Sequence record: NC_049850.1
Reading direction: 5' to 3' (one strand)
Length of the DNA: 64,000 nt
The notes below the pieces were generated by a model. That model saw only the letters and a list, made by a program, of their open reading frames with translations, searched no databases and had not been told where the DNA came from. Below, one piece after another: positions 12,008-37,955 of this stretch; positions within the stretch are counted from its first letter, which is position 1; each line of letters opens with the position of its first letter. The position numbers and the translations under genes were made by a program.

Positions 12008-13561
12008 CTACACCAGATATGGGGAATCCACGACCCGCACCGGCTTCTTCTTGCCCTTGATCGCAAGCATAGAATTCACGGTTCTGGATTCCCTGCGCTT
12101 TTCATCCGCCTGCTTTACCATCCCCGGGTTCTGTCGACGTGCCTTAGCGATTTTCTGTGCACGCTCGTCGACGATCACCCTAGCCAGTTTCCCGCGCGTC
12201 ACCAGCACACCCGTCTTTCGCTCGATCTCGCGCCCCAGCTTCCGCTGGCTTGTCCGGATTTCACCAGCCTTTGCTGCCTGCTTGAGAGAATCGAGGACAG
12301 ACGCCGCCAACTCTTCTTTCGCCTTCTTCCTGTCCACAGCATCCTGTGTCTTGGCCTTGGCCCGGGCCTTGACCACCTTCTTCTTCACCTTTGGCTTGTG
12401 GAGTTCCTGTACCTCAGCCTCACTGAGTTCCTGCATGTCGGACTCAAGTTCGGGGGCTTTCCGATGCTGGTGACCTACGCCCAACAGTTTGTCCTGCTCG
12501 TGGCGTCGACGTGCCGAATCCCGTTGTTTTGCTGCCGTGCTGCCTGCCTTTTTCGGTCTCCCGCCCTTGTTCTTCTCAAGCACAGGAATCGGTTCTGTGG
12601 ATAGTTGGGATTCCGATCCAGTTCCGTCCGCGTGAACCACGTCAATCCAGTCTGCAAACGGGTCGATTCCCACGCCAATCGTGGTGGAGTTCTGGGATTG
12701 TACAGGATTCCTGTGCTTCTCACCCTCGGCCGTAACGCCCACGCCAGCAGCCCCAATATCACCAAACAAGTCACTGAGTTCCTTGTCGGATTGTGTTGGT
12801 GTGCCCGTGCCCGTCTGGGCCCCGATGGGTGTGCTATAACTGGACACCGATTGCTTTGGGGTCGTGAGTTCCTGTGAATTAGCGTCGATCACCCCGTTTC
12901 GGTTAGAGAGCGTGGATTCGAGCATCAGGACCCTCGATTCAGCTAGTTCTGCCCGCTGTTCGGCATCGAGACGGGCCTGATCCTGTGGATCGATCTCTAG
13001 CCCCTGTTGGGTGGCCTGTAGTGCTCGTAGCGCATAGTTTTCTTCATTAAAAATTGGCGCTACGGGCCTCTTTTTAGGCTTTGTGCGTGGATACACAGGA
13101 TCAGTAGATTGAGCGGGCACCGGTTTAATGAGGTGTTTTACGCCACCCGATTCGGACTCCGAAATATCGAGCATGAAGTCGTCATCGAGTTCACCAGATG
13201 CTTGGGAGTCCTCACGAACTTCGGGGCCCGGGCCCCATTCCCAGTCGTCCGCGTCCTCATCATCGTAGGAGTCCTGAGCAAGTGCGCACACACGCTTAGC
13301 ACCCCCGATTTCCGAGATCGCGAGGTTGAGGTTCAGGGCGTGGAATTCGGCACCAGATTCACAGGGCTCACGCAAGACCGTGGGCTTCACCCCCATGTCG
13401 TGGAGCCGGGCGACCGTGGGATCGTGCATGAGACTCGACATCCGGATCGGCTGGTCTCCGTGCTGGACGAGCGCGAGAATCGGTTTGTTGGTGAAAGTGT
13501 AGCCCTGCACCGTGAACGAGCCGGGATGGGTGGGATCGAGTAAAATAATCAGATGTTGCAT
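12008..13561 (-). CDS. hypothetical protein (517 aa): acidic N-terminal half, disordered linker, basic C-terminus with possible HTH
   Basis: Only long ORF in this stretch; atypical A/T-ending codons; only minus-strand gene in the first 34.8 kb. Confidence 0.75.
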   Translation of the reverse strand: MQHLIILLDPTHPGSFTVQGYTFTNKPILALVQHGDQPIRMSSLMHDPTVARLHDMGVKPTVLREPCESGAEFHALNLNLAISEIGGAKRVCALAQDSYDDEDADDWEWGPGPEVREDSQASGELDDDFMLDISESESGGVKHLIKPVPAQSTDPVYPRTKPKKRPVAPIFNEENYALRALQATQQGLEIDPQDQARLDAEQRAELAESRVLMLESTLSNRNGVIDANSQELTTPKQSVSSYSTPIGAQTGTGTPTQSDKELSDLFGDIGAAGVGVTAEGEKHRNPVQSQNSTTIGVGIDPFADWIDVVHADGTGSESQLSTEPIPVLEKNKGGRPKKAGSTAAKQRDSARRRHEQDKLLGVGHQHRKAPELESDMQELSEAEVQELHKPKVKKKVVKARAKAKTQDAVDRKKAKEELAASVLDSLKQAAKAGEIRTSQRKLGREIERKTGVLVTRGKLARVIVDERAQKIAKARRQNPGMVKQADEKRRESRTVNSMLAIKGKKKPVRVVDSPYLV

Positions 13562-34292: not shown

Positions 34293-34596
34293 GAATCACG
34301 CACCCGAATTTCTCGTCACCGTCGACGCGCAGAGCAAGGCAACAGCCGTACTCGAAGTGCAGATCACGTCGAAGCTGGATCGTAGTCTGGTGAATCGTGC
34401 GGCTGGCCTGTATGGCTTCTTTCAGGTAAGCGGTGAAGAGGCCGCTGACATCGTATCGAGCGGCGTGGCGCTCACCAAGTTGCCGTCCGTCCTGTCGCTC
34501 GTGGGCTTCGGTGCCGCGAACCTGAAACCGAAGCGGCTGTTCCCGGACACTGGGGCGTTTCCGTTCGGCAAACCCGAGGGCGCGTATGTCGTCTGA
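34282..34596 (+). CDS. hypothetical protein
   Basis: AAGGAG SD; MATKNHAP... Confidence 0.75.
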   Translation: MATKNHAPEFLVTVDAQSKATAVLEVQITSKLDRSLVNRAAGLYGFFQVSGEEAADIVSSGVALTKLPSVLSLVGFGAANLKPKRLFPDTGAFPFGKPEGAYVV

Positions 34597-34750
34597 CTCA
34601 CGGATCAAGCTTCCGCGCGAACTGGAGGCCGCGATCCACAAGCGTCTGGTTCCGCTGTTGTACAAGCGCGATCAGGGCCGGGTGATGGGCGTGATCCGCG
34701 AAGAGTTCAGCCGGTATTTCGCGCAGCAACAGAAACCCACGCATCAATGA
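34586..34750 (+). CDS. small protein, possible ribbon-helix-helix (54 aa, not in ORF track)
   Basis: MSSDSRIKLPRELEAAIHKRLVPLLYKRDQGRVMGVIREEFSRYFAQQQKPTHQ. Confidence 0.6.
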   Translation: MSSDSRIKLPRELEAAIHKRLVPLLYKRDQGRVMGVIREEFSRYFAQQQKPTHQ

Positions 34751-34774
34751 AAAAGGGCCCAAATGGGCCCTTTT
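34751..34774. terminator. bidirectional terminator at the strand-convergence point
   Basis: AAAAGGGCCC-AAAT-GGGCCCTTTT. Confidence 0.9.
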
Positions 34775-34811
34775 CTGTATCTGATGTATGCTGAGTCACT
34801 TTGGCTCTTTT

Positions 34812-34862
34812 AGGCCCTGTACGGTGCGTTTTTAATGAAGAAAACAGCATCCTACAGGGCCT
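34812..34862. repeat. 10-bp perfect inverted repeat enclosing an AT-rich motif that recurs at 37297
   Basis: AGGCCCTGTA ... TACAGGGCCT around GTTTTTAATGAAGAAAAC. Confidence 0.75.
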
Positions 34863-34870
34863 TGTTACGT

Positions 34871-36751
34871 CTAGCTCTTGAGCGCGGCACGCCGGTTCTT
34901 CAGCAGCGCAATTTCCGCCTCGATCTCGTGGTTGCCGGGATCGCGTTCCAGCTTCTTGTTGAGACGCACGATCTTGGCGCTGAGGCTTCGGTACAGCTTG
35001 ATATTGTCGCCCATGGATTCAGCGAACCTGCTGCTGCGTGCCGCCTGATTGACGACGCGTGCTTCGTGCTTCTCCTGAGCCGTTGCCCCGTTGTACGACC
35101 AGCGGTGCATTGAGCCCAGCGCCTCAGTCGTGTCGACCGCGATCTTCGGGTAGTTGTGCATGCGGGCCCGGACTTTTTCCGCAAGCCCCATAGTCGACAC
35201 AATGGCCAACATACGCTTCTTCGTGTTGTGGTTCCGAATGTTCCCGCGACCAAGAGACTGGATCGCCTTGTCGACCACATAGTCCTCTGCCACGTCATAG
35301 TCAGGCAGCAGCGCGGTCAGCAGTTGATCGAGCAGCGGTGGCGGATTGATGGCGGCCAAGAAGGCAACGACGTTCGAGTGCATGAACTCGTTACGTCCCT
35401 CGACGGCACCCACGCTCAGGTGATGGTAATACTTGCGGTTGAACGCGTGGCTCAGATACTCCTTGTTGACGACGACCACGCCCTGCTGCACCACGTTGTC
35501 ACGTTTGACCGGAGCATTGTCTTTCCACCACGACTTGATCAATCGGTTGCTGGATTTCACCATCCACGCAAACACGTCGACCTCGCACCCGATTTCGCGC
35601 ATGTACGATTCGAGTTCGATTTGCTCGGGTTGCAGAATCCCCTTCTGCACGTCGGGATCGCGTTTGGCCCGCACCAAGTCCTGCAAGTGCTCGGTCGTCA
35701 CACCCAACTCTTCCATCTTCAGCTTGAACGGCATCAGCTTTTCCACCGGCATGATGACGCCGCGATCCAACTGGTTCTTGCTCGGCATCGCCTTGTCCAT
35801 GAGAAGTGGGACAATCGTCAGCTTCTCGTATCGGGCACTGACCTCCGAATGGGCCTTACCAAAACCGCCCGGCAGATGCTTGTTCAGGAATCGGTCGGTC
35901 TCGTTCTGGACTTGACAGCCCTCCATCTTCAGCAGGTGGTACATCTGACTGTTCTCGAAGTCGGCACTCATGATCATGACGCTCTTGAAGCCCACGAACG
36001 GCTGGCTGGGCAACGTGATCCCGATGAACGAGCGCTTGGAGCCGTGGCCACGGAACGATCCGAACATCTGCATGCGCACCGGCCCATCATCACCAGTACG
36101 CAGCGCGTCGTATATGTTGACGAGCGTGCCAAACGACCGCGCGTCGCCCTTCATCTTCACGAGACTGGCCAACCGGTTTGCGGGCAGCGAACGCGCGCGC
36201 AGCGTCATCAGGCCCTGCGCCTTCTTCCCGGTAACGCTGACGAGTTCTTCGGTATCGAACAGTTGGTGGAACAGGCGCTCGGTGGGCTCGTCGAACGTCA
36301 TGTTCATGTTCTCGGTCACCCACTTGCGCGACTCGTCGAATATGACAGTCGTTTCCTTGAACTTCGGGTGTCGGCGCAACTTGATGAAGGCCGCGTGTGT
36401 CAGGAACAGAATCGAGCCCGGCAGAAATGGGAGCGGGGCCTTGGTGTCAGTCGAGCGCCCGTCGAGCGCGGCCCGGATTCTCTCGTCGACGGTGGCCGTG
36501 GTCGACGTGTGTTTGTCGGCCGAGCGCGCGTACTCAGCACGTATCATTCGCTGCTCGTTCTCGTCGAGCAGGGCCCGGAGATTACCCAGCGTCTGACGCA
36601 ACAGGGCTTGGGTCGGAGCCACGTAGAAAATGTAGCCCGTGCCCTTGACGCCCCTCATGCCACGACGGATGTGCTTGGCCATGAAGTTGACGGCGGCCCG
36701 AGTCTTGCCAAGTCCGGGAACGCCGGACACGTATTGAACGGTAATGGTCAT
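34871..36751 (-). CDS. SF2 helicase-domain protein, possibly origin-binding/replication initiator
   Basis: VSGVPGLGKT (I), YVAPTQAL (Ia), LTHAAF (Ib), IFDES (II), MSADF (III), EGRN (V), QSLGRGNIR (VI); start taken at MTITVQ; origin-binding role is inference. Confidence 0.8.
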   Translation of the reverse strand: MTITVQYVSGVPGLGKTRAAVNFMAKHIRRGMRGVKGTGYIFYVAPTQALLRQTLGNLRALLDENEQRMIRAEYARSADKHTSTTATVDERIRAALDGRSTDTKAPLPFLPGSILFLTHAAFIKLRRHPKFKETTVIFDESRKWVTENMNMTFDEPTERLFHQLFDTEELVSVTGKKAQGLMTLRARSLPANRLASLVKMKGDARSFGTLVNIYDALRTGDDGPVRMQMFGSFRGHGSKRSFIGITLPSQPFVGFKSVMIMSADFENSQMYHLLKMEGCQVQNETDRFLNKHLPGGFGKAHSEVSARYEKLTIVPLLMDKAMPSKNQLDRGVIMPVEKLMPFKLKMEELGVTTEHLQDLVRAKRDPDVQKGILQPEQIELESYMREIGCEVDVFAWMVKSSNRLIKSWWKDNAPVKRDNVVQQGVVVVNKEYLSHAFNRKYYHHLSVGAVEGRNEFMHSNVVAFLAAINPPPLLDQLLTALLPDYDVAEDYVVDKAIQSLGRGNIRNHNTKKRMLAIVSTMGLAEKVRARMHNYPKIAVDTTEALGSMHRWSYNGATAQEKHEARVVNQAARSSRFAESMGDNIKLYRSLSAKIVRLNKKLERDPGNHEIEAEIALLKNRRAALKS

Positions 36752-37320
36752 TTGTAGAAACGTACAAACGGTTGAGGTACTGTAAAATTGGGGATCGGGG
36801 GTCAGGTCATGGCTCGGGTCCTCTAGGACGCGGAAATAAGGTGAAAAAGTGCAATAATTGAGGTAGGTGTAGAAACGCCTCGCTCCTAAATACATTAAGG
36901 AGTGACCCATTTACACGCAGGGTGGGTTCGGGAGGGGCGCAGCCCCTTCCGGTGGGGTGAGCGCAGCGAACCCCTCACCGATCAATTCACGCAGCAACGT
37001 GTTCAACAAGGGGTCTCGTGTCTGCTCTGGGAATGCGTGTCGCTTCGCTCCACGCTGCCCACTCGCTTCGCTCGTGATTGCTGTCGCTCAGCCGGGGCTG
37101 CGCCCCGTCAACCTAGGTGCCCGGCCCGAACGTGGTTTTGACGCATTCTATTAGGAGTGGGTCGTTTATACTCACGCTCCTGAAATGCTAGTTTTTATGC
37201 TTATTTTGAAAAACAACGAAAAACCCCAAAAACGAGGGTTCTTGGGGTCTTGATGTGTGTTCCCTTACTTTGCGGTTTTAAGCATCGATTCCGCGTGTTT
37301 TTAATGAGAAAAACTACACG
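36752..37320. other. 570-bp structured non-coding region, candidate replication origin
   Basis: Several hairpins, inverted copies of GGGGCGCAGCCCC, three GAGCG(A/C)AGCGA copies, direct repeats TGTAGAAACG, AT-rich tract at about 37185-37320. Confidence 0.5.
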
Positions 37321-37518
37321 CTATTCGGGCTTAATCTGGGCTCCACATGACGGGCAGAAGTTGAGGTGTACGACCTTCCTCACGTTCCAGTCCCCGTACT
37401 CGATGGTGTGCTCCCACAGTTCGACGAACGGGTCGTAGGTCCGCAACTGATCCGTGACCCCGAGCCCGGCCCTTACGTCTTGCAGGTATTGTGCACGCTC
37501 CGTGCAGCACGCCGTCAT
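37321..37518 (-). CDS. small zinc-ribbon protein
   Basis: ACC...FCPSCG. Confidence 0.7.
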   Translation of the reverse strand: MTACCTERAQYLQDVRAGLGVTDQLRTYDPFVELWEHTIEYGDWNVRKVVHLNFCPSCGAQIKPE

Positions 37519-37955
37519 CAGTCTAGGTCCGCACGCAGTTGCGTGTACAGGTCGACCGCCTTCTTGGTCGGCGCGTACGCCTGCTCGAACGAGCGGCCGC
37601 CATCCGCAAGCGTCGCCTGCATGATCGGGACCGCGAACCCGTTCTCGACCAGAAAGTCGACGGACGCCGGGTTGATCGTGGACTGGGCGACGGGCCCGTG
37701 GTCGATCATGACGTTGAGCGTGTTGATCACGGCCTGCAACCGATCCTGAGACAGGTCGATGAATTCGTACGTCAGATCGTCGTACTCGTGAACATGCGTC
37801 ATCACGTCACGCAGATCGCGGTAGATTTCGTTGACCGTGCTGCTCGCCACCTGCGCGAGACGCGGCAGGATGCTCGTGTGCACGACGTGGGCCAGATGGG
37901 AGAGCCGGGCCATGCGCTGACCCACGATCAGTTCTGCTGCTGTTTGCGTTGTCAT
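37518..37955 (-). CDS. hypothetical protein
   Basis: AAGGAG SD; MTTQTAAE... Confidence 0.75.
   Translation of the reverse strand: MTTQTAAELIVGQRMARLSHLAHVVHTSILPRLAQVASSTVNEIYRDLRDVMTHVHEYDDLTYEFIDLSQDRLQAVINTLNVMIDHGPVAQSTINPASVDFLVENGFAVPIMQATLADGGRSFEQAYAPTKKAVDLYTQLRADLD

Follow-up and report, generated by a model that had tools for sequence, protein, structure and literature searches.

We analysed a convergent gene junction in the final 64 kb of the genome of Burkholderia phage BcepSaruman (MK552140.1, 263,735 bp; bases 199736-263735, hereafter the window, to which positions refer unless they are given for the record). Annotated genes run on the plus strand as far as 34750 and on the minus strand from 37321; a strand map from long open reading frames was uninformative at 58% GC. 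Between the two gene arms lie BcepSaruman_381 (gene 381), which encodes a predicted superfamily 2 (SF2) helicase, and 569 bp without an annotated gene, situated between the helicase coding sequence (CDS) and the gene 382 side (Table 1). A copy of an AT-rich 18-mer stands at either end. Across this interval the window is 98.9% identical to BcepSauron, the only sequenced close relative of Saruman. We read the interval as one copy of a conserved, portable two-part module that consists of an SF2 helicase gene and a putative non-coding cis-element of about 0.5 kb.

The gene 381 unit lies between two terminators. The first, an apparent bidirectional one between gene 380 (+) and the helicase gene (-), was not listed by the rule of the terminator scan, and its loop differs in BcepSauron at 34762/34763. 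The second was called by the scan and ends the upstream minus-strand operon, so gene 381 needs its own promoter. The true start of gene 381 is the ATG at 36751. The longer frame of 679 amino acids (aa) annotated in BcepSauron was not supported, since homologues begin 3-10 residues ahead of the Walker A motif. No purine-rich Shine-Dalgarno (SD) sequence precedes this ATG and no sigma-70-like promoter was found in a consensus scan of 34600-37600, in agreement with an earlier note on this DNA made from its letters alone. A weak promoter-like sequence ends directly before the start codon (Table 1), and the helicase mRNA could possibly be leaderless.

The product of gene 381 (gp381) carries the SF2 motifs I, II and VI, namely Walker A GLGKT at residues 12-17, FDES and QSLGRGNIR, respectively, together with an inserted beta-domain and a C-terminal coiled coil. 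Six residues (K16, D139, E140, Q498, R502 and R506) are invariant across an alignment of 34 homologues. The protein matches phrog_2467, a family without assigned function, and its N-terminal Pfam DEAD match is weak (E = 1.4e-6; 28.6 bits against a cut-off of 26). A PDB sequence search returned no related solved structure. The AlphaFold 2 (AF2) model, with a predicted local distance difference test (pLDDT) score of 91, has an SF2 core with insertions and two tandem RecA-like domains. Its fold matches XPD, DinG and DdmD with Z scores of 12-13 over 380-428 residues (residues 1-546) at an identity of 10-14%, and the defence helicases DdmD and Hna are among its nearest structural matches. Like XPD, DinG, DdmD and Hna, gp381 has two RecA-like domains with insertions in the first, but no nuclease domain was found, and the 4Fe-4S domain is absent because gp381 has just two cysteines where the XPD/DinG (Rad3) family requires four. 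Since flavivirus NS3 is an equally good match to the core by itself, the model assigns gp381 to the SF2 superfamily level only. From a viral structure library, gp381 retrieved no protein outside its own family (BCSR5-like proteins, phiRSL1 ORF295 and Motura).

The non-coding neighbour of gene 381 contains a GC-rich dyad core bracketed by GGGGCGCAGCCCC at 36934-36946 and its complement at 37094-37106. Within the core, a mini-hairpin motif capped by G/A pairs (GA-capped), GAGCGCAGCGA, lies on the plus strand at 36959-36969, and the motif GAGCGAAGCGA lies on the minus strand at 37040-37050 and 37063-37073. RNA folds of the core have z scores of about -3 on either strand. A single 170-nucleotide (nt) hairpin or cruciform was considered for the core and rejected, its DNA inverted-repeat alignment being no better than that of shuffles in Saruman. 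At the homologous locus L056, moreover, forward and reverse copies match at the level of the motif only and not along extended arms, which is a further point against a single palindrome. The core is thus predicted to be an array of local hairpins arranged in a dyad. A small gene was equally rejected, as the alignment with the paralogous locus described below has gaps of 5, 1, 1 and 1 nt.

Table 1 Features of the gene 381 interval, with positions in the window.
Feature	Position	Strand	Basis or remark
Bidirectional intrinsic terminator (apparent)	34752..34776		GC-rich hairpin GGGCCC-AAAT-GGGCCC with A- and T-runs on either side, read from the sequence
Long imperfect hairpin tipped by 18-mer copy 1	34812..34862		9 nt beyond the helicase stop codon
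BcepSaruman_381, SF2 ATPase/helicase, 626 aa	34871..36751	-	Annotation, Pfam DEAD, phrog_2467, AF2 model
AT-richer spacer by the start codon	36752..36868		No SD; weak TTTACA-N16-TACGTT ending 7 nt before the ATG
Two inverted copies of a ~21-nt repeat (TTAGGAG..G..C.TTT..AC)	36869..36919		Repeat finding; gene-proximal side of the core
GC-rich dyad core	36925..37110		Sequence, repeat finding, motif search, folding
Third copy of the ~21-nt repeat	37153..37174		Repeat finding; distal side of the core, AT-rich stretch
Intrinsic terminator closing the upstream operon (gene 382 and beyond)	37220..37251	-	Terminator scan
18-mer copy 2 in a short hairpin, GCGTG...CACGC	37293..37320		Directly past the gene 382 stop; fold z = -1.9

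The motif of the core belongs to a shared 11-nt motif, GAGCGNAGCGA, which is a GCGNAGC mini-hairpin capped by G/A pairs. We compared 21 discovery loci that carry helicase homologues, including phiRSL1, Motura, BCSR5 and PhiXhv-12/-16, as well as metagenomic phages and islands of Burkholderia that lie next to integrase or resolvase genes. Beside the helicase gene GCGNAGC occurred at a density of 4.0 per kb, versus 0.99 per kb in the flanks. The full motif accounted for 17 of the 83 GCGNAGC matches beside the gene and for 1 of 293 in the flanking DNA, of which there was about ten times more, an enrichment of approximately 170-fold. Four of the five GAGCGNAGCGA-type copies in the Saruman genome lie within the neighbours of its two homologous helicase genes, 381 and 194. 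Similarly, the 231-kb genome of phiRSL1 holds a single GAGCGNAGCGA copy, which lies upstream of the helicase gene homologue ORF295. The enrichment held in an independent set of 18 non-redundant metagenome loci (8 motif matches per 15.8 kb upstream). All 8 non-upstream matches in this set came from the near-identical loci L056 and L057, where the dyad lies downstream of the gene and its AT-rich spacer of ~110 nt separates two forward from two reverse copies.

The bases that flank the motif differ from copy to copy and yet pair with one another. Outer stems of at least 4 bp were present in 18 of 28 distinct instances, the stem sequences being all different. Outer-stem pairing had a mean of 4.18 bp versus 1.8 bp for permuted partners, and 0 of 2000 permutations reached the observed value. 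Because this pairing goes far beyond chance, selection appears to act on a hairpin with a variable stem of 4-8 bp and a fixed tip, in which a GNA loop on a GC stem of two pairs is predicted to stack on tandem G/A pairs. In one copy the triloop gives way to a GNRA tetraloop (GTGA). The hairpin-forming copies also follow a strand pattern in most loci, lying forward on the distal side and reverse on the proximal side. No mention of the motif with its co-varying stems was found in the literature searched, and we regard it as a solid and previously unreported observation. A fifth copy of GAGCGCAGCGA occurs at record 23767, inside gene 060 and away from helicase homologues.

The second helicase gene of this family in Saruman, gene 194 (record 110623-112530), encodes a protein that is 38% identical to gp381. 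Its non-coding neighbour, 567 bp long, lies at a divergent junction. Window positions 36995-37065 are 81% identical to the region upstream of gene 194, which is the sole other match to the core in the 263.7-kb genome. The core is inverted relative to the gene between the 381 and 194 loci. A single inversion linking the two was rejected, since the core and a block around the 18-mer are each inverted with their order kept, and no single rearrangement fits.

Adjacent non-coding DNA of 0.3-1 kb accompanied the helicase gene at all 21 discovery loci. The jumbo-phage homologues (phiRSL1, Motura, BCSR5, PhiXhv-12/16 and several metagenomic phages) have 320-840 bp of it ahead of them, usually where two genes diverge and next to a gp46/47-like recombination nuclease gene or a RecD-like gene, and the position beside replication and recombination genes is syntenic in every phiRSL1-like phage examined. 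The homologues in bacterial islands are lone genes with 0.6-1 kb of non-coding DNA upstream. Their neighbours are a resolvase, an ImmA/helix-turn-helix (HTH) pair and an integrase in B. cepacia; a resolvase and two adjacent reverse transcriptases (RVT_1) in B. ubonensis (L016:6219-9875), the latter looking like a defence-type pair; and AlpA, or a D5-type primase with an integrase, in metagenomic islands. A scan of genome contigs yielded one 469-nt fragment. A quick maximum-likelihood tree places gene 381 among the proteins from islands (SH-like approximate likelihood ratio test, SH-aLRT, 97) and the gene 194 type with other jumbo-phage proteins, a placement that fits acquisition of gene 381 as a module.

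Two further features recur at the homologous loci. A box, C-N-GTAAATA-Y, precedes the start codon by 6-75 nt at 16-18 of the 21 discovery loci and at 9 of the 18 independent loci; it is missing at gene 381 in the orientation of the gene. Locus-specific direct repeats of 20-52 nt are clear in L012, L016, L017, L018, PhiXhv-12/16 and L034. Saruman has AT-richer flanks and only the three diverged copies of the 21-nt repeat.

The conservation of the interval was followed further in contigs from four metagenomic or isolate runs, which covered it in part; a run of the phage itself and an RNA run were looked for and not found. In relative X1, represented by one mosaic contig of 9.6 kb, the flanks (34700-34885 and 37204-37400) are 97-98% identical to Saruman and the right half of the core (36997-37108) is ~97% identical, while the alignable parts of the helicase CDS reach 75-83%. 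The stretches that hold the 21-nt repeats, 36752-36996 and 37109-37203, are replaced by other sequence in X1, the second of them by 18 other letters. Between Saruman and Sauron, equally, the helicase CDS shows 21 differing positions and the stretch 36864-37189 none. Since both comparisons pair a conserved core with a diverged CDS, the core is held much more tightly than the helicase protein. The unit is present in 4 of 4 relatives (Sauron, X1, X2 and X3), so that an empty site is not known. Towards the 3' end of the helicase gene, at window 34885-35202, X1 contig 1 has 1057 nt in place of 316 nt, which from the sequence would be either an extra protein segment of ~250 aa or an inserted gene.

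These features argue for a helicase-linked, cis-acting DNA element rather than a leader or a simple operator, because the element may be placed upstream, inverted or downstream, carries motifs on both strands, and keeps its core where promoter-proximal DNA has been swapped. A 5' leader is excluded by the copies on both strands and by the inversion of the core relative to the gene at this locus. We put forward the element as a candidate origin-like or single-strand-initiation site at which the linked SF2 helicase would act, a proposal that we hold tentatively and rate slightly below an even chance. An origin with its initiator is nevertheless the best single reading, given dyad motifs that would form in single strands, free placement relative to the gene and likeness to known priming sites.

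The element would act as DNA. The spacer would open and each strand would extrude hairpins that resist single-stranded-DNA-binding protein (SSB), and the linked helicase and the primosome of the phage would take these hairpins as signals for loading or priming. From the geometry of the commonest arrangement, hairpin-primed synthesis would proceed away from the spacer on either side. Gene 194 and its element, at a divergent junction, may represent the ancestral, origin-side copy; gene 381 and its element would then be a second copy, probably horizontally acquired and placed where the gene arms converge. Over the whole genome, cumulative GC skew describes a V, with the minimum at 101.5 kb and the maximum at 234.5 kb. 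The gene 194 locus is reached by the flat trough around the minimum and the gene 381 locus lies at the maximum, which fits the gene 194 element as the ancestral origin-side copy.

A number of observations weigh against an origin served by this helicase. The gene 381 locus coincides exactly with the global GC-skew maximum and with a convergent junction, and is in this respect terminus-like; the skew, which the earlier note had proposed as a check on replication initiation here, would thus argue against the 381 copy being the main origin, though skew in this genome also tracks gene orientation. No sequence-specific DNA-binding domain was identified in gp381. SF2 helicases of the XPD/DinG-like kind are not known to act as initiators, and the phage has a DnaB-like replicative helicase of its own (gene 316). 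The proteins gp381 and gp194 are only 38% identical while the core segment is nearly identical, such that a protein reading the core could use conserved parts only. Saruman itself has only weak direct repeats (22 nt, 73% identical), and the bacterial copies sit in surroundings that resemble defence islands. Finally, Arg replaces the second glycine of Walker A (PPGTRKT, PPGARKT) in homologues P0004, P0028 and P0006 (L012:4001, L016:4001 and L017:487). This substitution is unusual for an active P-loop, and these may be family members with altered ATPase function.

The proposed site has parallels in known systems. GCGNAGC mini-hairpins are exceptionally stable, resist SSB or bind it poorly, and are present in the N4 hairpin promoters, at the primase sites of phages G4 and St-1 and, within RSF1010 oriV, in ssiA (PMC13037366). 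The ssiA/ssiB signals of RSF1010 (IncQ) oriV resemble the module in several respects: hairpin signals with GNA-type tips lie on opposite strands by AT-rich DNA and short repeats, a dedicated helicase is linked to them, and the replicon is portable between hosts (PMC13037366). In the module, too, GA-capped hairpins are found on both strands and their stems co-vary. The two differ in that the RSF1010 helicase RepA is a hexameric RecA-type ring and that of the module an SF2 enzyme, that RSF1010 has a separate iteron-binding initiator (RepC) and a primase (RepB'), and that the motif sequence is not the same.

A similar likeness is seen to the primase and primosome sites of G4, St-1 and phiX174 and to the N4 hairpin promoters, where short and very stable GCGNAGC or GCGNNAGC hairpins in single-stranded DNA are not melted by SSB and are read by a priming or transcribing enzyme. 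PriA, the reader of the phiX174 site, is an SF2 helicase as well. Those systems, however, use single sites on single-stranded genomes or injected DNA, whereas the module presents a dyad array in a double-stranded jumbo phage and in islands, and its hairpins bear an additional conserved G/A cap (GA...GA).

Herpesvirus UL9 with oriS/oriL, to which the earlier note had pointed, offers an analogy only, that of an SF2 helicase with inverted elements around a spacer. Inverted motif sets around a spacer are indeed present in the module, as a layout seen in its sequence. Kinship with UL9 was not borne out: at E up to 0.1, Pfam gives gp381 only DEAD, ResIII and AAA_16 and no Herpes_ori_bp, its fold is nearest to XPD/DinG, and gp381 has no recognisable UL9-like C-terminal DNA-binding domain. 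A different herpesvirus-like trait concerns genome architecture. The related phage phiMatilda is reported to have invertible terminal segments between long inverted repeats, possibly collapsed in assemblies, and the same is reported for Sarumanviruses (bioRxiv 10.64898/2026.10.21.760668). The window spans the right-hand terminal region, and a segment junction might fall where the gene arms meet, at 34.8-37.3 kb.

A further-reaching proposal is that the helicase and the GA-capped hairpin dyad constitute a self-sufficient, portable replication-start cassette of an undescribed kind, in which an SF2 helicase recognises extruded mini-hairpins. Such a cassette would be common to phiRSL1-like jumbo phages and to integrative islands or satellites of the host; the islands could replicate, or capture the phage replication machinery, during infection, and the GTAAATA box would be a phage-dependent switch. 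We consider this unlikely. If the hairpins do act as loading or priming signals, a combination of mini-hairpin DNA signals and an SF2 helicase in double-stranded genomes would be new, and it would also supply a marker for origins or satellite replicons in uncultivated phages. A protein family and an 11-nt structural motif that travel together offer a concrete candidate for the replication start of the phiRSL1/Saruman jumbo phages, a group whose genome architecture is only now emerging (phiMatilda preprint, bioRxiv 10.64898/2026.10.21.760668).

The element could instead encode a structured non-coding RNA, or be read as RNA on both strands, and partner the helicase in conflict between genetic elements (defence, anti-defence or satellite interference), with jumbo phages and islands exchanging the two as a cassette. 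The lone bacterial homologues beside integrases, resolvases, the ImmA/HTH pair, AlpA, the D5-type primase and the two reverse transcriptases suit such a role, as do the structural matches to DdmD and Hna and a helicase CDS that diverges much faster than its flanks in close relatives. Co-varying stems would suit an RNA too, and the copy with a GNRA tetraloop counts in favour of this explanation. Hairpin-forming copies on both strands, on the other hand, would require two transcripts, and forward and reverse copies are alike at motif level only. The synteny beside replication and recombination genes in the phiRSL1-like phages also speaks against a conflict role. PADLOC-DB 2.0 returned 0 families for gp381 at E up to 0.01, Rfam 15 gave no match at gathering score anywhere in the 64-kb window, and a tRNA/tmRNA scan of the window found none. 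We see an RNA or conflict system as improbable, although an RNA-guided or hairpin-sensing system of this type would be equally new.

Slightly less probable, in our judgement, is an elaborate but ordinary promoter or operator, with the hairpins as autoregulatory sites for a helicase that works in recombination, repair or fork processing elsewhere. The recurrent C-N-GTAAATA-Y box resembles a minus-10-only promoter of the T4-late type, the region by the paralogue also carries the promoter of the divergent gene 195, and the recombination nucleases and RecD-like helicases next to the phage homologues are the neighbours that such a helicase might have. Against this reading, an operator would not need co-varying hairpin stems, L056 and L057 have their dyad on the downstream side of the gene, and the gene 381 locus has an inverted core and lacks the box. 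X1, moreover, keeps the core at ~97% while its promoter-side stretch is replaced. GTAAATA itself occurs four times in the 64 kb, and two copies (window 5207 and 9264) lie ~90 nt upstream of gene 310 and of gene 316, the DnaB-like replicative helicase gene. These two positions hint at a promoter class for replication genes, the copies being too few to decide. GTAAATA as a general phage promoter was set aside because there are only 4 copies in 64 kb.

The earlier note had described the 18-mer as a repeated motif that bounds the helicase gene and its upstream region. Copy 1, GTTTTTAATGAAGAAAAC (34828-34845), and copy 2, GTTTTTAATGAGAAAAAC (37297-37314), both on the plus strand, differ at two positions, and shuffles of the window gave zero matches at up to 3 mismatches. 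The near-identical direct repeats described in that note are thus real, and they do enclose the helicase gene with its non-coding region. Copy 1 tips the 51-nt inverted repeat that had also been described, in which the outer 10 bp are perfect, the 22-nt arms are 82% complementary and the DNA fold has an energy of -16.5 kcal/mol (z = -6.1). This hairpin is 98-100% conserved in the metagenomic relatives X1 and X2. Copy 2 forms a hairpin as well, a weaker one (Table 1). The 23 nt to its left also resemble the flank of the 18-mer copy at the paralogue, the resulting 40-nt alignment between the two loci being 83% identical.

As a boundary of the unit the 18-mer did not stand. The genome contains at least five copies of it, most of them at conserved hairpin tips; four of the five best copies tip hairpins whose lower stems are of a different sequence each time. 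One-mismatch copies occur in frame within gene 321 (window 13037) and at record 112985, which is 456 bp upstream of gene 194 and 96 bp ahead of gene 195. Copies with three mismatches lie at window 3327 and record 9868, the latter in a 744-bp intergenic region. The copy that precedes helicase gene 308 is a weaker one. The paralogous unit has a single copy only, and the 18-mer was not found at any homologous locus outside Saruman and Sauron. The 18-mer is, by these comparisons, a separate structural signal specific to Sarumanvirus and not the end-mark of the helicase unit; two of its copies happen to flank the gene 381 unit. What stands of the earlier proposal is the self-contained, portable unit of helicase and non-coding DNA, duplicated in this genome and recurring with its motif and structure in relatives and bacterial islands.

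A 2.5-kb mobile insertion ended by the 18-mers, as att-like or target-duplication repeats, is very improbable, for although direct repeats enclose exactly the gene and its non-coding DNA, gene 381 groups with island-borne homologues and the unit lies between two terminators where the gene arms meet, the 18-mer recurs at three or more other places of the genome (one inside a CDS), is single at the paralogue and absent from the homologous loci beyond Saruman and Sauron, the unit has no recombinase gene, all four relatives carry it with no empty site known, and hairpin tips on unrelated lower stems point to a function of the 18-mer itself.

Two of the outlying 18-mer copies lie in unusual surroundings. 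Gene 321 (window 12008-13561, minus strand) is the only minus-strand gene within the long plus-strand arm and encodes a highly charged protein of 517 aa, with no Pfam or PHROG match. Its 18-mer copy reads IFNEEN in frame and lies inside a hairpin with a 7-bp stem, and the local GC and AT skews are strongly reversed. The 744-bp intergenic region near the left genome end (record MK552140.1 9710-10453; L036:1211-1954) has repeat sets of its own, namely two copies of CACGCGAATTAGACCCC.TGTTT and two copies of AAAACCGGATGGGG.G.GGGG, and its diverged 18-mer lies ~100 nt before a promoter-like TTGACG site.

Elsewhere in the record, 1.3 kb at MK552140.1 28203-29497 (L038) next to the gene of a GIY-YIG homing endonuclease is without an annotated feature and falls at a divergent junction. 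Next to the interval itself, gene 380 (window 34586-34750, 54 aa) represents the truncated remainder of a gene of 214 aa, annotated as a ribonuclease in BcepSauron (compared with L002:3987-4631), and ~480 bp of Sauron are missing from Saruman directly ahead of the shared terminator.

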